From contig CP075493.1 of the NCBI GenBank assembly GCA_021613535.1, positions 12,648,001 to 12,712,000 on the forward strand: a stretch of 64,000 nucleotides of DNA, written 5' to 3'. This document shows, one piece after another, positions 36,412-46,566 of the stretch. Positions within the stretch are counted from its first letter, which is position 1. Each line of letters starts with the position of its first letter. The notes under the pieces were generated by a model. It saw nothing but the letters and a program-made list of their open reading frames with translations, ran no database searches and was not told the origin of the DNA. This DNA is from Adineta vaga. Lineage: Eukaryota > Animalia > Rotifera. The position numbers and the translations under genes were made by a program.

Positions 36412-37179
36412 ATGTCTTCTTCATTTAATGGAAAAGTCGTGATTGTTACAGGATCGGCCAGTGGACTAGGGAAAGTAATTAGTCAACATCTTCTTATCGC
36501 TGGTGCACACGTTGTTTTATGTGATGTCAATGAAGCAGCTCTAGAAGCAGCATACAATGAGCTAAAAGAACATGGGACATGTACAGCTATAAAAACGGAT
36601 GTCTCGTCATCTTCATCAATACAGGAACTCTTCGAGAAAACAATTGCTCACTTCGGAAAAGTCGACATTCTCGTTAATAATGCAGGCATCATGGATAAAC
36701 TTGATGGTGCAGCCGATTGTGAAGAAGATTTATGGAATCGAGTATTAGCAATCAATCTGACCGGTCCATATCTAACTACGAAACTCGCAATTAAACATTT
36801 TCTGGCACGAAATAGTCCAGGTGTCATTGTGAATATTTGTTCTTTGGGAGGCATTTTAGGTCATCGAGCAGGAGCAGCATATACAGCAAGTAAACATGGT
36901 TTAGTTGGATTGACAAAAAATACCGCTGCAGCCTATGGTAACAATCAAATTCGTTGCAATGGTATTTGTCCTGGTGCAATGGAAACGAATATATCTGTTG
37001 CATTAGCAAATGGATTTCATCAACAGGGTATGGCAATTCTTCAGAAGGCCTTAGCTACCAATCCTGGCTTATGTAATCTTGATGAAATGGCAAAGCTTGT
37101 AGTGTTTCTTTGTAGTCAAGACTCAAATGTGTTAAATGGTGCTATCATCAACGCTGATATGGGATGGAGTGCTGTTTAA
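36412..37179 (+). CDS. Classical short-chain dehydrogenase/reductase, intronless
   Basis: TGSASGLG, NNAG, catalytic YTASK, ICPG, INADMGW. Confidence 0.93.
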   Translation: MSSSFNGKVVIVTGSASGLGKVISQHLLIAGAHVVLCDVNEAALEAAYNELKEHGTCTAIKTDVSSSSSIQELFEKTIAHFGKVDILVNNAGIMDKLDGAADCEEDLWNRVLAINLTGPYLTTKLAIKHFLARNSPGVIVNICSLGGILGHRAGAAYTASKHGLVGLTKNTAAAYGNNQIRCNGICPGAMETNISVALANGFHQQGMAILQKALATNPGLCNLDEMAKLVVFLCSQDSNVLNGAIINADMGWSAV

Positions 37180-37407: not shown

Positions 37408-40400
37408 TTAAGGTTGTCGTATGATGTATACCGTATAATCTCGTGCTTCACCATGACCACCATTGTGACAAGGCTTACGATTGTATGAATCTCTAGATAA
37501 CATCACACGCATTATATGAGGTTCATCGATCATATTGTATCTATTAATCACAGGAATATCAATATTCAAATCATAAATACCATTGATATAGCCGGTATTA
37601 CGATGCTCGTCAGTCAATAATCGTTCTCTAGTTTCATCGAATTGACCGTCATTGTCTAGATCCATCCACACATCAAGATAATGCGGTATATTGCAATTCG
37701 TAGTCACCGATGATCGATCTATTCTATCAGAATTTGTGTAACTCCATGGTTCCACACAATATAATTCAATTTTAAGCATATACATTTTGTTTTCGAATAA
37801 TTTCACACTTAGACGACTTTGATCATGATAATTATCGGTCGCACTACATCGTGTCATTTCATCGTGAAGCAATGTGTTTTGTTCGCCCAATAATTTCATC
37901 GATAAAATGGCATTACTACCCGCTGAACACATCAGATTGCCAGGCAAACAAAGTGTTGATTCAGTCGCAGCTAAAACAAAGAGGCAACTAGTAGTGAATA
38001 TTAACGACCTAAAGATATAACAAACCTGCTACGAGATGAACTATGAAATCTGGTTCTGAATTTGGTTCTGGTTCATTGACATAACCAGCATCTAAATATA
38101 GAATTATATGAATATATAGTAATCAGTTAGTATATAAAGATCTTACCTGGACATCTTTTCCTTGGAATAATATTAACGTTATATTCTCGTATTTCACTAT
38201 AATCTGTTTTACCACATTCTCTTTGATAAGCATCACTTCGTATCAATCGAATACGCATGAGATGTAACCCTACTTTGACATTTATACCATCAATTGCAGG
38301 TATAGAAACTTGCAAATCATATCCATGTTCAAATGTTTCACTATCGATTCGTGATCGACGATGAATTCGATTTTCAAATGTATCAAATTTCCCATCACCA
38401 TTTAAGTCAATCCATACGTCTGGGTGGTAGACAAGAGCACAATCGTTATCAAGAACATCTTGATTATATTGTTGAGGACAGTCCAGTTGAATTCTTATTA
38501 TATAGACCGTATATCCATACCATGTAACACTAAGATGATGTCGATTTTGATATGCACTGACAAGCATACCACTTGGTGTTTCGTCTCTAATTTGTGTTGC
38601 TTGTTCTCCACCAATATGAACAAACGTAATTTTTGCAGGATTGGAAGTACATGTAAATGTTTTTGTTGGAATAGTCAAAACGGGACAAGCCACTAGAAAC
38701 ATTAGTTAATCGATATAGAACTGTATTGAAACGAAATTTTCTTACCTCCACACATTGCTTTTGGAAGGATGTTGACCATGTATTCTCGTACTTCGCTGTA
38801 ACCACTATTTTCACAATCTCTTTCATAATCACCATTTAGTGTAAGACGAACGCGCATACGATGTTGTCCATTTCTTGTATTAATATTGTCAATCGATGGT
38901 ATACACACTTCTAAATTGTATTCACCTCGTGAATTTTGATTATGACTGAGTGAGTGATGAAGAACTCGATTCTCAAATTCATCGAATACTCCATCGTCAT
39001 TGAAATCAATATGCACATCCACACTATATCTAAGATTACAGCCATCATCGTACGAATTATCCCGAGATTGTCGTCCACAATCCAATTGAAGATGTAACAT
39101 ATTCACGCTACTTTCACATAATGAAACACTGATATATTGTCGTTGTTGATAGTCATTGATTGCAGTATGTAGAGGTGTTTGATCCCGAAGTTCTGTATTT
39201 TGTTGACCAACCATTGAAATAGACATGATTTTAGCAGGATTCAAAGAACAGACTGGCTTGATTACTGCAAGCGGTGGAATTGTTGTAGTCACTACTAGCA
39301 AAGTATAAATAGAGATTAAGATATTATCCATGTTTATTGAAATTTTACCTGGTTGTCTGATAACTTGGACAATGTTGAGGGTATATTTACGTGTCTGGCT
39401 ATAATCAGAGAAACCACATCTTCTATTATAATAGTCACTTGGTCTCAATTGAAGTTGCATTTCATGTAATCCACTGATCATATTTCGATCATCGACCGGA
39501 GGTATCGAAATTCTCAAACTAGATGTACCTCGTGACATTTCATTATTAGTAGATGATTGGTAATAAATTCTATTTTCTGTTTCACTAAATCTTCCATCAT
39601 TATTTAGATCAATCCAACCATCTATATGATAAGCAAGACCACAATCATATCCAAGTGAAGTACTACTCGTTTGTTGAGGACAGTTTAGTTGAATACGTAT
39701 ATCGTTTACAGTATCTTCATAAAATGTCATGGTACGATCTTGTCGATTATTGTAGTCATTGATCATTGCATTTATCGGTATCTCGTCACGAATCTCCATT
39801 CCTTGTCTATCATCCGTTAGAATAAGTATCAGATGACTAGGAATCAATAAGCAGAATGAATCAACCGATACTCTGGTTGTAGTTAAAGGACTGACTATAA
39901 ATACAAATTATATTTCATCATTAAACATAGTTTGTTCAGATCGTCGATAGCACGAAATTAAGAACTTACTTGGCTCAGTAACCGGTACGAACATCATTGG
40001 TTTTTTTGTTGTTTTCGGCTTTCTTCTTGCTGCTTTTCGACTTACAGTAATCGTCGTTGTCGATGTTGTTGTTGTTGTTCTTGTTGTTGTTCTTGTTGTT
40101 CTTGCTGTTGTTCTAATTGGTTTTTCTATTACGGGTGTAGTAATTGGTTTTTCTATGAACAGCTCTTCTGCTTCTGTATAAATATTGAAAAAACAGATTG
40201 TGATGTTTTAATAGTATTTTCTTACTTTTCAATTCTTTAAGAGCACATAGCTTCATACTAATATTTGAGAATCGATCATCAACAAACTGAATTATCATAG
40301 GAAAATAGACAATTCGATCGATTTTGTTTTTAAAATTTTCCACGAATTTGTTCACACATATTTCGTCTGAAGAAGCACATTGATCTGTGAGTGAAGTAAC

Positions 40401-43400
40401 AAAATGCAATAGAAGAATATTTCCATACAGTGAATTTCTACAGATTTTCCTTGAAAAATAGTGAAATATGAATGAGAAAAAGAGAACAAATTATTAATAC
40501 TAACCAGCGATATCGATTTGATAGTGAAGTATTGTAAAAAAATCCATCAATAATACGTATTTTATGATCGTTCAGTTTCATATTCAACTACAAAGAGCGA
40601 TAGAAAGTTATGAAAATAAACTGTATTCAAACAAGTATTACCTGCTCAGTAAGATCATCGATATCTATTATAGTTTCTGCATAATTTCTGTCTTCCAAAA
40701 TATAACTTGTAGCAAACATTGCTTTGAGTGCTATTTCTCGTTTATCTATATATTTACAAGATAAATATGATTATGAATGTGAGATTTCAATTAACCCTTT
40801 TCTGTGATAACTGTTACGGCAGCTGTTCTTCGAATTTGTGGTAAATATTTCCATGCAACACAAATGATCAATAGCGCAAGAAGACACGCAAGTAAACAAC
40901 AAATACCGACGCAAATGAGATATAATCGACGCCTAATTTCGTTCAAAAAAGAAAAAGATATTACTGCACAATAGTATCAATATTATTATATTTACGAGCG
41001 TTTTGGTTCTAATCTTCTATTACGAGTTATTGTTTGTGTTTCGAAATCTTCCTTTGTATACGGGGGCGTTGTTATCTTGATTTCAGACTCCTAAAAATGT
41101 ATCGATGTGTGAGACACAGAGAAAGATATTACAATAATAGTTTACTGCTGATTTCTGATCCAGTTGTAAACGCTTTTCTGCCGTTGAAGATGAAATTTCA
41201 CCAGTCTGCTCGATACTTTCACCACTTGTATGTTGAATCTTTTGTCTCTCATCTGATGTGGTAGATGATTCTTTGTAACCTTCTGCTTGTGCAATTCTCT
41301 TTCGAGTATTTTGCTGATCAATACTACGGGATTGTCCGGATGTACTTTCTGTGACTACAACATCTACAGCCCTCGTACCAGCACTGTATTGGGATGATTG
41401 CTGACTGTTTGATTTGCTGCAGGCTCCACTTTTAAGAGATGTTTGTTCGTTACCAGCCTTTGCACTAAATTGAGCCGATTGTTGACCACTTGATTTACTG
41501 TAGCTTCCACTGGCTATCATCATTTCTTTGCTACCTGACTTTCCAATAGATTGAGTTGATCGATGACCACTTATTTCAGCTGATGTAGCACCTGCGATGG
41601 ACATCTGTCCACTAGTTGATTTACTGTAGCTTCCACTTGCTATCATCATTTCTTTGCTACCTGTCTTTGCAATAGATTGAGTTGATCGACGACCTCTTAT
41701 TTCACCTGATGTGGCACCTGTGATGAACATTTGTTCACCACTTGCTTGAGCAATGTGCCCAGCTGAGTGATGACCACGTGATCCAACAATTGTAGTCGCT
41801 TCCCTTGTAATTAGATTTACTAATATGGTAAAAGAAAACATTTTATTAATTCAAAAATTCGCGAAAACGATGTGTGTTATGTTTTTCTTCTCGCTGTACA
41901 TGAACATCCTACGTAAAATGACTTTCTATGGCAATGAAAATATTATGAAGACACCGTTAAGATGGATCTTCTTACAAGTATTTTGATAATATCTAATTCT
42001 CTCAAACATAGCAGAAGTATAAATATATGTCTCCAAAGAATATAGTAGTCAGTTGATTCTACAAGATATCTTTTAATTAAATCTGACATCTTTATCCATA
42101 TCAAAAGTCAAATAAATTCTGATTAAAAAAAGTATTCCTTGATTAATAAACCCGATCTTCCCTATTTTGAATAGTAGATCAAAACAATTCTTACCTGTTG
42201 ACCAAGCTGCAAAGCATGAAATGCCACCACTGATCACTTCTTGAACACCATTCATAGTAATAACTTCACCCGATGATGAGAGAATTATTAAATATGGAAT
42301 GGCTGTCACACTATATTTACTACATAGTGCATCCTTTCGAGCTCGATCTAGCAGGACAAAGAAATATCATCCTATTGTTTCATCTTTCCAACAAATTAGT
42401 TTATTACCTGCATATGGTAATGCATACCATGGCATTTCATTATAATAACTATTAAACTCATTTTCATCTCTGTCAAAAGATACAAATACAATTTCAAAGT
42501 TCTCTCTCATTTCTTGAGACATGCTGTTGTAAAGTTCGATGAGCTTCAGTGTAAATTTTTGGGAAGGAGGACACCAGTGACCACTAAAAAAGTAAGTACG
42601 ACAATGAATATAAACGAGAATGAGACTTTAAACTTACGAAAAGTAGAGACCAATATTTTTGCGTGCAAGCTGCGCGGTAGAGATATATGTGACGATCTCA
42701 GCATTGCCATAAGTATCGTGGTAAAGTAATTCATCGCCCAGTAATTCGAAATATATTGCTGATGATATTTGATTATCGTTCTTATGAGCACTGTGACGGG
42801 AATATTGATATCTGCTTGATTCACCGGATGTTCCCCGAGTCATCGCTATTTGTTGGCCACCTACAGCAGTATGATGGTGATCTACTTCATCAGCAAATCT
42901 GACTGTTGTCATCGTGATTTCACTTGCTAATGTAGAAAAATAGAAAAAAAATCTTTCGGAATATCTTCACTGAATCGAAAGTGTTGTACACCTACTGCAA
43001 GGGAGCAACTATATATCCTTTACAGTAATTGCTATACATATTTTTGATACTTTTAGATTATGATTATCATCATTTAGAGAAATCAATTTTGATAAAATCA
43101 GATCATAGGTATATTTTTGTTTGAAATTGCTAATCATATTTATCAATGATATCCTTTTATACGTAAGCATATTTTAGTATTTAACGTATCATGGTTTAAT
43201 GTTCTTATGTACTTATGTCGTACGGCGAGAACATAGTGTGATCATTTATTTACAAATATTCGATGAAGTGAAAGGAAGAATCGAATTTCGTGAATTTGTA
43301 ATGAGTGATCATATATCTCCAGAATGAAACCAAAAATAAATATTATTGTTTATCTAAGAATATTGAGTTAAATCAAAACCACAAAAGACGATAGAAATAT

Positions 43401-44347
43401 CAAGGACACAAATCACTCTACGATGTTGATACAAAATCTTACTAAGTATCTGTGCTCACATCATGGTTTAGTATTAGTATCAAATTACTTCCATAGATTG
43501 CCGATCGACATCAGAACGAAATTGCCAAACGTTCTCTTACCTGCAAACCAATTTCGAACATAATCGAAATTACCACTATACACTTCCTGAACACCATTCA
43601 CAGTGATAATTTGACCAGACGGTGAAAGAATTATCAAACATGGAATGCCTTTTACACTATATTTGCTGCTCAATACATCCTTTCGAGTTCGATCTAACAT
43701 GAAAAAGAAATATCATCCTATTGTTTCATCTTTCCAATAAACTAGTGTATTACCTGCATATGGTAATGCATACCATGGCATTTCATTATAATAACTATTA
43801 AACTCTTTTTCACTGTTATCGGATGATACAAATACAATCTTAAAATTTTGTTTCATTTCTTGAGACATATTGGTGTAAAGTTCGACCAGTTTAGGTGTGA
43901 ATTGTCGAGAAGGAGGACACCAGTGACCACTAAAAGAAAAAAATTAGTAATACTTAGAATACGATAAAAGAGTAAAACATACGAAAAGTAGAGTCCAACG
44001 ATTTTATCTTCGAGTTCAGTCGTAGCTATGTAAGTAATAGTTTTGATATTGGTATTAGCATTATGGGAGAGCAATTGATCACCTAGCAATTCTGAAAATA
44101 TAGACGTGGTTATCATGATATGTTGACCGTCCGTAATACTATCGTGATCATGCTCTTCATCGTGAGAATATTCGCTAGATGTTTCTGTTACCATCATGAA
44201 TTCATGTCCTTGTGTACCACTAATGTGATGGTCAAACTCCTGTACACTTGCATTGCCGGTTGCTGTTGTTGTCGTCCATGTTGTTACAGTGTATTGACCG
44301 TCCGTATCAAACACTTGTTGATGTAATTCTTCGTGAGGTGATGCCAT
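37408..44347 (-). CDS. ~1,700-aa type II membrane protein: 2x nucleoredoxin-like (WCPPS), Ser/Gly repeats, TM, Cys-containing domain, Thr-rich stalk, 4x GEVED-like; 18 exons
   Basis: Every junction checked by hand has GT-AG sites and keeps the frame (e.g. WFA G|CA SEITMTT; WST G|TA NLITREA; KSA|ESE; KRS|RRLYLIC; EP A|TC SPL). No in-frame stop from ATG 44347 to TAA 37408. Confidence 0.75.
41470..41745 (-). repeat. Coding tandem repeat (~41-aa unit, 2+ copies) within the large gene
   Basis: GQM.I.GATS.EI.G.RSTQSI.K.GSKEMMIASGSYSKS repeated with near-identical DNA. Confidence 0.85.
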
Positions 44348-45396
44348 TATTATCACAATCTAGATCACTAATATGAAAAAGTAGAGAACATTAATGATTC
44401 AGATAAAACAGAGGGCAAAGAAGAAAAGAGACGTTTGGTTCGTTCGAAAAATACCTTTGTATTTGTGTAGACGATAAAATATTTATAGTGTATTAAATTT
44501 GTGGTAAAAATCTCATATTTCGACGTTTTTCGTCGGAAGAAATATGATCGTTTAACAAATATCAAGAAAAAGGAATATTTTAATCGACTTCTGATATATA
44601 CGAGAGAGAGAGAGAATCAACGCATAGTGCAGACTGATTTCTATTTTCACATTTATCAACATCCATTCACCCACACTGTATCTATACGAAATGAAAGTGG
44701 TTTGGCTTTTCTCCTGCGGCCTTTTTATTCATTGATAGAGTAACGTGTGGGAACAGATGTTGTCTCATTTATTTTTACAAGATAAATATGAAAGATTCCC
44801 TGTTTATTGCATGTTAATATACAGACTCACCTGTGTTGATCCGTGAAGAAACATCGGGGGTTTTCCCTCTTTCATCAATTATAATTTTTTAAATATTTAC
44901 TTGGGAAAGAAAAATTCGTGCAAATACCAATATCTTACCTGAATGAGAGAGAAGAATGCTCTATCACAAGTGTTGTATGACTTAATTCCTAGTCATAATA
45001 GGCAAAATGAAAAACAGATATTTCGGATTGGTTAACCGTCAGAATAAAAAGATATTTTAATTATATGATGATTTTATTGATTGATTTAAGCTATACACAA
45101 CTATTTAGAATGACTTTTGTGGCGCATTTTTCTGTGAATTAAATCAAATTAAAAATAATCATGTAGTCTTTCACATATATTCTGAAGACTAAGTTTATCA
45201 TTTCTCTTAGCCATATTGCAAAGACATCAAATAAACCAATCAAAAATATACTCGAATATATGATAAGAACGTTTTCTAATTCTATATCACGATAACATGT
45301 TCTTTATGAAAGAACTCGATGGTGTGAGGGGGGAGGGGGGAGGCGGGTATATCTAATCCACGCACACCAGAATAAAGAATATAGTTTTTTTACTAG

Positions 45397-46566
45397 TTAA
45401 TTGGTTTGAATCCATTTGTTAATATTGTCAAGTGTATTTCTTGCTTCTGGATAATAAAGAAAAAATATTGGATAAATATGCATCATGTATAAACCTTCTT
45501 CAAGGGTTACATCGACACCAGCTTCTTGTGCTTTCTTGACGACTAATCTTCCTTCATCTTCTAATAACTCAGCTGTACCTACATTGATATACATTGGTGG
45601 AAAACCTTTAAATGAGCCAAAAAGAGGACTGAATATCGGACTCTTTGGTGATAGTTGCGAATGATTAGGTCCTAATACTTGTCGAATCATCCATTCGCTA
45701 TTGTCAGGACTAACCATGATATCAGTAAGACGATTTCGTTTGTAACTTTCACCAGATGCTGACAGATCAACCATAGGTGATAGAGCAATAAGACCATGAG
45801 GAATAGGTAATCCCTGTGTGATTAAAGCTTGAATTGATAGTAATGACAAACCACCACCAGCTGAATCACCCATAATGATTAATTGAGATGGTAAAATGTT
45901 TTCTCGCAATAGAGCACGATATAATGCAACTGTATCTTCGACTGCTGCTGGCATTGGATATTCAGGACAAAGACGATATTCTACGTGAAGAAAAGTTGTG
46001 TTAAAAAGATGTGATAGATGACATTCAAATCTTTCATAACCTATTTAAAAAAATTTCTAAAATTTAAGAAGGAAAATAACAAATGCATTACTGTGGATAT
46101 CCCCTAACATGTATCCTCCGCCATGAAAATAAAGTATGATTTTATCAGATTTTCTTTGAAACTTATTTTGATGATTGTTAATCCAATAGGCATCTACTGT
46201 GTGTCCATTATATTCGAAGACTTCTTTGTTTATTTTGCATGAAGATAATTTAGGAAGTATTTCACTAGCGGCGAATGCAGCGCGTTGTTCTTTGATCATA
46301 GTGAGTGGATCGGCTGTTCGATCAAATTCTGCGATAGGATTCATACGAATCAAATCTTGAAAAGCATGATAACCTGCACTCACTGGTGCTCGTGCTGGAT
46401 CTGGTAGAATCGTATGTTTTAACGATAGTATCGAATGTAAGACACGAATAGTAAGATAAGTAGGATTCGTTGAACCATAATATAGAGGAATAGCAATAGC
46501 CACAATTAAAATGAATATCACTAATTTCTTCAATAATTCGAATAAATCATTGATGAATATTGGCAT
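45397..46566 (-). CDS. HSL-family alpha/beta hydrolase (esterase/lipase) with N-terminal anchor, 2 exons
   Basis: YFHGGGY, VEYRLCPE.P.PAA.ED, GDSAGG nucleophile elbow, E and H catalytic region. Intron at ~46041-46091. Confidence 0.9.

Follow-up and report, generated by a model that had tools for sequence, protein, structure and literature searches.

A window of 64,000 nt from the genome of the bdelloid rotifer Adineta vaga (the whole stretch of DNA analysed here, C1:12648001-12712000) carries on its minus strand, at 44347..37408, a gene of 18 exons that joins nucleoredoxin-type thioredoxin domains to GEVED modules in a single predicted membrane protein. Positions given below are those of the window unless a contig is named. 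The exons, whose borders were placed by reading the minus strand from 44600 to 37200, add up to 5,103 nt, which by phase arithmetic equals 1,700 codons and a TAA stop codon. None of the 18 exons contains an in-frame stop, all 17 introns have GT..AG ends and the phases at every junction are compatible. An in-frame TAG lies five codons upstream of the ATG at 44347. Fifteen of the 17 introns are 50-75 nt long, the remaining two measuring 614 nt (intron 3) and 375 nt (intron 6), and the window is AT-rich (G+C 0.27-0.35). A preliminary description of this DNA, made from the sequence letters, had proposed the same order of domains, namely two thioredoxin domains, a Ser/Gly-rich spacer, a transmembrane (TM) segment, a Cys-containing domain, a Thr-rich stalk and four GEVED modules, and all the motifs that it quoted were found.

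The description had also regarded the protein as hidden among unrelated open reading frames (ORFs). This is incorrect, as GenBank contains an identical 1,700-residue model, UJR17248.1, deposited as 'hypothetical protein I4U23_004143 [Adineta vaga]'. This record holds all 18 exon translations in order, with one split codon left over at each phase-1 or phase-2 junction. It was also the best match of a 16-module profile (see below) among 1.84 billion representatives. Window DNA was searched exon by exon, whole-protein analyses were based on UJR17248.1, and paralogs were sought in the full genome (100.8 Mb, six contigs).

One minus-strand gene is transcribed here, and splicing of its 18 exons yields an mRNA that encodes 1,700 residues, in agreement with the phases, open frames and GT..AG borders. 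Four public sequencing runs (X1, X2, X4 and X6) were aligned over 38430-44420. X4 and X6, two samples from one 2025 study, are spliced and hence RNA-derived; X2, an independent run from 2013, is unspliced DNA that covers every bin of the aligned stretch. Nothing in run X1, presumed to be RNA, matched this stretch. The spliced X4 and X6 contigs display 15 of the 17 junctions with minus-strand GT..AG ends. The last two introns (38146..38092 and 38025..37971) lie outside the aligned stretch and are based on the public model and on an alignment with the Rotaria ortholog. All four of the junctions that the preliminary description had named for an RNA check were present. Junction 43541/42926, which spans the 614-nt intron, was strongly represented (side of 153 nt in X4 and of 84 nt in X6), and junctions 41146/41090 and 40996/40932 were seen in both samples. 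The weakest was 42195/41819, spanning the 375-nt intron, which occurred in X4 only with a 20-nt side; a second contig ends at 41821 with 8 loose nt that correspond to the end of exon 6. RNA depth was zero inside both long introns (43030-43429 and 41830-42029). Exons 7 to 12 follow one another without a break in one contig, and two others extend from exon 14 beyond exon 16.

Table 1 Exons and long introns of the A. vaga gene, with their content and the evidence for them (window coordinates).
Feature	Position	Strand	Content	Evidence
Exon 1	43983..44347	-	ATG, His/Thr-rich leader, N-terminal strands of thioredoxin domain 1 (ending ...VGLYF-S)	UJR17248.1 residues 1-121; X4 and X6 contigs span 43983-44348
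Exon 2	43754..43929	-	Thioredoxin domain 1 core (GHWCPPSRQF ... MPWYALPY)	Thioredoxin_8 5.5e-17; contig loose end at 43929 agrees with exon 1 end
Exon 3	43541..43693	-	C-terminal part of thioredoxin domain 1, cis-Pro loop KGIPCLIIL	Weak Thioredoxin_8 tail match; junction 43754/43693 present in X4
Intron 3	42927..43540	-	614 nt, between thioredoxin units 1 and 2	Spliced 60-mer absent from genomic window
Exon 4	42638..42926	-	Second His-rich leader and N-terminal strands of thioredoxin domain 2; exon 1 paralog	
Exon 5	42408..42583	-	Thioredoxin domain 2 core (GHWCPPSQKF ... MPWYALPY)	Thioredoxin_8 3e-16
Exon 6	42195..42347	-	C-terminal part of thioredoxin domain 2 (TAIPYLIIL)	
Intron 6	41820..42194	-	375 nt, between thioredoxin tandem and Ser/Gly exon	
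Exon 7	41146..41819	-	Low-complexity Ser/Gly/Thr-rich spacer; 126-nt unit in two copies (41490-41738, 91% matches)	No Pfam match
Exon 8	40996..41090	-	Basic stretch (...RNRRLEPKR) ahead of membrane segment	Flanking junctions in X4 and X6
Exon 9	40796..40932	-	Sole transmembrane segment RRLYLICVGICCLLACLLALLIICVAWKY	Kyte-Doolittle 19-residue mean 3.26
Exons 10-12 and two short introns	40226..40745	-	Juxtamembrane domain of ~140 residues	Four invariant Cys, GNIL.L
Exon 13	39970..40173	-	Thr/Arg/Lys-rich mucin-like stalk	Composition; codon repeat 40056-40112
Exon 14	39349..39894	-	GEVED module 1, 546 nt, phase 1 to phase 1	Pfam GEVED; junctions seen
Exon 15	38746..39294	-	GEVED module 2, 549 nt, phase 1 to phase 1	Pfam GEVED; junctions in X4 and X6
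Exon 16	38147..38692	-	GEVED module 3, 546 nt, phase 1 to phase 1	Pfam GEVED 1.5e-09
Exon 17	38026..38091	-	Acidic linker, 22 residues	Phases, UJR17248.1, Rotaria ortholog alignment
Exon 18	37408..37970	-	GEVED module 4 and TAA (37410-37408)	Pfam GEVED 8.4e-12

Both thioredoxin units belong to the nucleoredoxin/tryparedoxin family, which the preliminary description had named correctly. Against a gathering cut-off of 27 bits, Thioredoxin_8 (PF13905) scored 62.3 bits on exon 2, 60 bits on exon 5 and 190.6 bits over two stretches of the whole protein. The active site reads WCPPS in both domains, in agreement with the monothiol pair proposed, and the dithiol WCPPC occurs in neither. NEMPWYALPY is present in both units, together with cis-Pro loops (KGIPCLIIL and TAIPYLIIL, respectively). 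The solved sequences closest to exon 2 are tryparedoxins, the top match, 1i5g, being itself a WCPPS chain of tryparedoxin II. Across the family (A. vaga, A. ricciae, Rotaria magnacalcarata, R. socialis and the transcript contig P0164 described below), all nine readable active sites are CxxS, whereas the other 19 Thioredoxin_8 loci of A. vaga comprise 15 CxxC sites, three CxxS sites and one that is neither. As read from these sites, the monothiol state is therefore a conserved family trait and not the decay of one copy.

In retaining W-C-P-P, the MPW motif and the cis-Pro loop, the A. vaga domains resemble other members of the nucleoredoxin/tryparedoxin family, and tandem Thioredoxin_8 repeats are likewise found in nucleoredoxins, e.g. 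among plant and algal matches. They differ in being CxxS and in being tethered to a membrane-spanning protein rather than soluble, and the typical zinc-finger or other partner domain of nucleoredoxins is absent from the A. vaga protein. Single-pass membrane proteins with a thioredoxin fold, some with non-CxxC sites, are also known from the TMX family. In TMX proteins, however, a signal peptide is present and the thioredoxin domain is luminal and of the protein disulfide isomerase type, whereas the A. vaga domain is N-terminal, nucleoredoxin-type and predicted to be cytosolic, with no signal peptide. The nucleoredoxin described as radiation-induced in A. vaga (PMC10809525) is a different gene, FUN_020174, with a ZZ finger.

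Several further observations concern these thioredoxin units and their relatives. Exons 2 and 5 are identical at 149 of 176 nt, and introns 2 and 5 at 54 of 60. Within A. ricciae, the two units have motif strings in common that are not those of A. vaga. The pattern points to either gene conversion between the tandem units (42195-44010) or independent duplications in each species. Elsewhere in the A. vaga genome, an identical stretch at C3:17505670-17505846 and C3:19523768-19523944 carries another WCPPS nucleoredoxin-type domain. The copy at 17.5 Mb is likewise laid out over three exons, with ~55% identity, and the 10 kb examined there contained neither TM nor GEVED exons. A third CxxS-type site (WCPSS) lies beside a WCPPC domain at 1.274 Mb on C2.

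The only strong hydrophobic segment in the protein spans residues 699-717, and the N-terminus is hydrophilic. The segment is preceded by a basic flank, RNRRLEPKRSRR, and followed by WKYLPQIRR, and A. ricciae, P0164 and the DNA of the Rotaria locus all retain it. Neither a signal peptide nor a bacterial sorting domain was detected in UJR17248.1 by Pfam and hydropathy. Judging by the single hydrophobic segment after basic residues, the Thr-rich stalk, the conserved module cysteines and the lack of a signal peptide, we infer with fair confidence that the protein crosses the membrane once in type II orientation, with cytosolic thioredoxins and extracellular GEVED modules, which is also the topology that the preliminary description had put forward.

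The membrane exon is easily overlooked. The public R. magnacalcarata model P0162 (CBCPNK020000802.1, L020:9100-9235) omits this small exon and uses the wrong frame there. The DNA of the Rotaria locus encodes it in another frame, NRFCLLCLGIICLAIFLIALLLILIIWKVLPQVRK, and we rejected a Rotaria ortholog without a TM segment in favour of a mis-spliced public model. The R. socialis models likewise contain no hydrophobic segment. Since Rotaria models omit this exon, automated surveys of architecture or topology will miss the membrane anchor. The cytosolic spacer ahead of the anchor (UJR17248.1 residues 439-693) is Ser/Gly-rich with a 42-residue repeat in A. vaga, whereas its Rotaria counterpart (P0162 residues 560-650) is rich in Lys, Glu and Pro, with EKPVKKV-type repeats, and is unlike it in sequence. 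This difference suggests that only the length or disorder of the spacer matters.

Immediately beyond the membrane, the domain encoded by exons 10-12 retains its four Cys and its GNIL.L motif, both invariant, in paralogs and orthologs. Pfam recognised no domain on exons 1, 4, 7, 8, 10-13 or 17; exons 10-12 and nine aligned homologs gave no Pfam match, and no SEA match even at E values up to 10. One of five AlphaFold2 (AF2) models of the domain was confident, with a predicted local distance difference test score (pLDDT) of 80. When this model was compared with 48,161 chains, the four best fold matches were all SEA domains (TMPRSS6, Z 6.6; MUC16, Z 6.5, 6.3 and 6.2), with Gpr126 next (Z 5.8); every match was below the Z of 8 advised by the tool. 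Foldseek returned nothing for the model at an E value of 0.001 or better. The G|S-V-V-V autoproteolysis motif is absent, the invariant G-N-I-L-x-L having no Ser, Thr or Cys nucleophile after the Gly. The fold matches are suggestive of a SEA-like domain, and its position beside a signal anchor agrees with this. SEA-bearing type II proteins, such as TMPRSS6 and other type II transmembrane serine proteases and MUC16, share the predicted layout of cytosolic N-terminus, signal anchor, alpha/beta juxtamembrane domain, stalk and repeated modules. Unlike them, the A. vaga protein has no Pfam SEA match, has GNIL in place of the self-cleaving GSVVV and contains no protease domain.

Beyond the Thr-rich stalk, identified by its composition, the four repeats are true Pfam GEVED domains, going beyond the 'GEVED-like' label first given to them. 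PF20009 (gathering cut-off 24.4 bits) matched four separate exons or ORFs with 39-69 bits, and the whole protein with 117.5 bits in four stretches. The Pfam domain covers only the C-terminal half of a beta-sandwich module of ~180 residues, since AF2 (16-sequence alignment) folded module 3 as one all-beta domain over 181 residues (pLDDT 73, predicted template modelling score 0.71). Modules 1-3 each occupy one symmetric phase-1 exon, and the module in exon 18 is 44% identical to the last module of the paralog on C5. Every A. vaga module has four conserved Cys and a D-x-N-x-D-G-x-F-D-x-x-E loop, the latter also found in a bacterial relative. The position of the G-E-V-E-D motif is kept and its letters have diverged (DYSQTRKY, GYSEVREY, DYSEIREY and GHGEARDY). 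Fold comparison matched the module to Ig-like sandwiches (9x1i, Z 9.7; RhoGDI, 9.0; transglutaminase N-domains, ~8), and Foldseek also returned generic Ig-like matches. The module profile found no solved relative among Protein Data Bank sequences, the only matches being non-significant ones to dockerin loops (E 0.75). The loop resembles Ca2+-binding DxDxDG loops, and the ectodomain probably binds Ca2+. The stalk is probably O-glycosylated, and with fair confidence the ectodomain is taken to be disulfide-bonded.

We further investigated the occurrence of these modules in A. vaga and other bdelloids. Three other A. vaga loci carry GEVED modules, at 12.94 Mb on C5 (five modules) and at 5.20 Mb and 6.24 Mb on C3 (four each), and the present locus is the only one in the genome where Thioredoxin_8 adjoins GEVED. 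All three paralogs combine the TM segment with GEVED modules and are without a thioredoxin tail. In the C5 paralog, a tail of only ~20 residues precedes the TM helix, which is followed by the juxtamembrane domain known from the present locus and by five modules. Neither C3 paralog has Thioredoxin_8 nearby; juxtamembrane exons are visible in one of them. The existence of paralogs without the thioredoxin tail indicates that the tail is an addition in one subfamily. At ~5.198 Mb on C3 (L014:3958-4428), the aligned region of one of the four modules is interrupted by an in-frame stop, and a further GEVED fragment, with four stops, lies at C1:14852874-14853083. These copies may be decaying or may contain unrecognised introns.

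The architecture recurs outside A. vaga, as a search with UJR17248.1 revealed. A partial A. ricciae model (P0160) has two thioredoxin units (WCPPS) and the TM segment. In R. magnacalcarata (P0162) there are four units (WCGPS, WCRPS, WCRHS and WCQPS) and five GEVED modules, with 48% identity across the modules, and in R. socialis (P0183) two units (WCRPS read in one) and three modules. P0164, an intron-free transcript contig of 3,076 nt from another organism, encodes one thioredoxin unit (WCPPS), the TM segment, the juxtamembrane domain and three GEVED modules in a single ORF. All named eukaryotic matches were bdelloid (Adineta and Rotaria). The preliminary description knew of no described protein with this architecture; no study of one was found, but unreviewed bdelloid entries with Thioredoxin_8 and GEVED do exist, among them R. 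socialis A0A818GBH8, auto-named protein-disulfide reductase. In a full-text literature search, GEVED was discussed for bacteria only, nothing appeared on a family combining thioredoxin, TM and GEVED, and rotifer nucleoredoxin came up only as the different, radiation-induced gene with a ZZ finger. The protein is a new arrangement of known domains that is conserved in bdelloids, annotated and uncharacterised.

Bacterial gene acquisition is common in bdelloids, and the GEVED modules probably have such an origin, because their nearest non-rotifer relatives appear to be surface proteins of Bacteroidota of the type IX secretion system (T9SS) type. In a protein atlas, a Rotifera-only cluster came first and Bacteroidota clusters next. 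Beyond rotifers, the module profile matched giant proteins of 2,000-7,600 residues in up to 28 stretches, some of them whole-module matches. Most of the 150 matches listed were without a taxon; among the non-rotifer matches listed, all those with a name or gene context were Bacteroidota. The named giants were 'Chitinophagia bacterium' and 'GEVED domain/Secretion system C-terminal sorting domain' entries. One giant protein, encoded among bacterial housekeeping genes and ending in Por_Secre_tail, aligned over 178 columns at 24% identity, and the alignment takes in both the acidic loop and the terminal motif.

GEVED has otherwise been described for bacteria, in adhesins (PMC10952558). The A. vaga modules share with the bacterial proteins (CshA-type adhesins and the Bacteroidota T9SS giants) a D-x-N-x-D/N-G-x-F loop, a C-terminal ...E.R.Y.V motif and the arrangement of tandem modules on an extracellular stalk (PMC10952558). 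In contrast to them, the A. vaga gene belongs to an animal and has introns where modules meet, and its product has a cytosolic domain, four conserved Cys per module and, where the bacterial proteins combine a signal peptide with a sortase or T9SS anchor, a signal-anchor helix. The product also lacks the NR2 ligand-binding domain of CshA, and the bacterial GEVED motif has diverged to SE(V/I)RE, GEARD or SQTRK.

Taken as a whole, we favour a transcribed 18-exon gene for a membrane protein with cytosolic thioredoxins and extracellular GEVED modules, together with the evolution and mechanism set out here, and put the probability of this reading at roughly 0.65. The first ~690 residues would be cytosolic, comprising two WCPPS folds of the nucleoredoxin/tryparedoxin type and then the disordered Ser/Gly spacer. 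A single signal-anchor helix would follow the basic cluster, and the possibly SEA-like Cys domain, the Thr stalk and four beta-sandwich modules of ~180 residues would be extracellular. The protein would belong to a bdelloid family of TM plus GEVED-module proteins, one subfamily of which would have acquired a host nucleoredoxin-type tail before the Adineta/Rotaria split. With low certainty, GEVED-bearing bacterial adhesins (PMC10952558) can serve as a model for the ectodomain, which might bind a ligand or a surface outside the cell. The CxxS domains might, just as tentatively, engage glutathione or partner proteins in mixed disulfides instead of carrying out dithiol turnover; such capture is conceivable because the attacking Cys is kept and the resolving Cys is gone. 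A surface protein could thereby be tied to the thiol redox state of the cell, although the certainty of this step is equally low. An adhesion or receptor-like role with a thiol-capturing cytosolic tail may be conjectured. We consider it unlikely that the more specific scheme holds, in which Bacteroidota adhesin modules fused to host monothiol nucleoredoxins would serve as bdelloid surface receptors, with ectodomain binding or Ca2+ state governing mixed-disulfide capture, or cytosolic redox governing adhesion (e.g. in desiccation/rehydration); this would amount to transmembrane signalling through thiols, for which no animal example has been described.

Several points weigh against the favoured reading. 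The proposed function and localisation are predictions, and the topology follows from sequence rules only. The whole mRNA is spanned by no single read or contig, and the exon 6/7 junction comes from one sample, by a 20-nt side and an 8-nt loose end. All of the RNA evidence consists of assembled contigs, which are blind to isoform proportions and to transcript starts and ends, and a shorter TM-GEVED isoform or a thioredoxin-only isoform may also exist. The SEA-like assignment is weak (Z 6.6 is below the caution line, there is no Pfam match and one of five models was confident). Ca2+ binding was proposed from a motif whose sole sequence similarity to dockerin loops has an E value of 0.75, and the probable bacterial origin was deduced from the ranking of matches.

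Alternative accounts of the locus dispute either the unity of the gene or the chemistry of its product. Bacterial contamination or an assembly chimera as the source of the GEVED part is refuted. GEVED is otherwise described for bacteria (PMC10952558) and the nearest named non-rotifer relatives are bacterial, but GT..AG introns separate the modules and are spliced in RNA, the G+C of the GEVED part (~0.33-0.35) is uniform and similar to that of the flanks, the independent 2013 DNA run covers 38430-44420, four module-bearing loci lie on three chromosome-scale contigs and orthologs occur in several bdelloid species. Separate neighbouring genes for thioredoxin unit 1, thioredoxin unit 2 and the Ser/Gly-TM-GEVED part, with the long-intron junctions arising as rare read-through or as chimeras merged by predictors, are highly improbable, although the two linking introns (614 and 375 nt) exceed the other 15 in length by a factor of 5 to 12. 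It is also the case that an in-frame ATG lies just after the exon 4 acceptor and another ATG just upstream of exon 7, that exons 3 and 6, if unspliced, reach stops after ~20-40 residues and that the exon 6/7 junction is thinly supported. However, junction 43541/42926 was recovered in two samples with long sides (153 and 84 nt), the long introns have zero RNA depth and the upstream partner of the exon 7 acceptor matches exon 6. The intron-free contig P0164, moreover, has thioredoxin, TM and GEVED in one ORF, and A. ricciae, R. magnacalcarata and R. socialis keep this order.

One gene may instead encode a structural adhesion or glycocalyx protein in which the thioredoxins are redox-inert scaffolds, with no thiol chemistry or signalling; we judge this unlikely. 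The loss of the resolving Cys from every domain of the family would fit such a protein, as would the three paralogs that do the extracellular job without a thioredoxin tail and the variable number of thioredoxin units between species (one, two or four). Truncated nucleoredoxin-like RdCVF, for its part, works without oxidoreductase activity. Yet the attacking Cys, the preceding Trp, the cis-Pro loop and MPW are retained across genera, a pattern more typical of a working monothiol site than of decay, and the closest solved sequence is a WCPPS tryparedoxin chain. The conserved attacking Cys could also mean that the CxxS domains are glutathione-dependent monothiol catalysts (deglutathionylation, peroxidase support) anchored at the inner face of the plasma membrane and guarding it in desiccation/rehydration, the ectodomain serving for placement only. 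Bdelloids depend heavily on antioxidants, and a different nucleoredoxin is strongly radiation-induced in A. vaga (PMC10809525). A membrane-anchored catalyst of this kind is nevertheless very unlikely, as a large, conserved, disulfide-rich ectodomain would be costly as a mere anchor and the 18-exon gene does not appear in the examined parts of the PMC10809525 tables.

For the combination of nucleoredoxin-type and GEVED domains in one membrane protein, databases hold only unnamed or auto-named bdelloid entries. If the favoured reading is correct, the gene would be a clear case of domestication, in which a probably bacterial surface module acquired introns, multiplied exon by exon and became connected to a cytosolic domain of the host. 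Thiol partners at the plasma membrane could then be sought with the natural CxxS site as a trap. Tailed and tail-less paralogs in one genome would provide a built-in comparison for what the thioredoxin tail contributes.

Three odd joints were present in the RNA contigs, two of them skips (of 1,399 and 1,406 nt) and one that 'goes back 1,286', all linking equivalent points of the two thioredoxin units. We rejected these as exon-skipping isoforms in favour of assembly cross-overs between near-identical units, because stretches of 32, 52 and 50 nt are exactly identical between the units, long enough for a 31-mer graph, and because one contig orders the exons 1-5-3, which is impossible in a linear transcript. 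In-frame skipping of one thioredoxin unit (618 nt) may nonetheless occur. The X4 and X6 contigs both start exactly at 44348, one base before the ATG, without loose letters, which may reflect a true, very short 5' untranslated region, a trimmed spliced leader or an effect of assembly.

Other coding sequences flank the gene. Upstream, an alpha/beta hydrolase exon (Abhydrolase_3) occupies 45397-45954 on the minus strand. Downstream, 229 nt past the stop codon, an apparently intron-free short-chain dehydrogenase of 255 residues (adh_short, 4.5e-54) is encoded at 36412-37179 on the plus strand; this intron-free neighbour might be of foreign origin.

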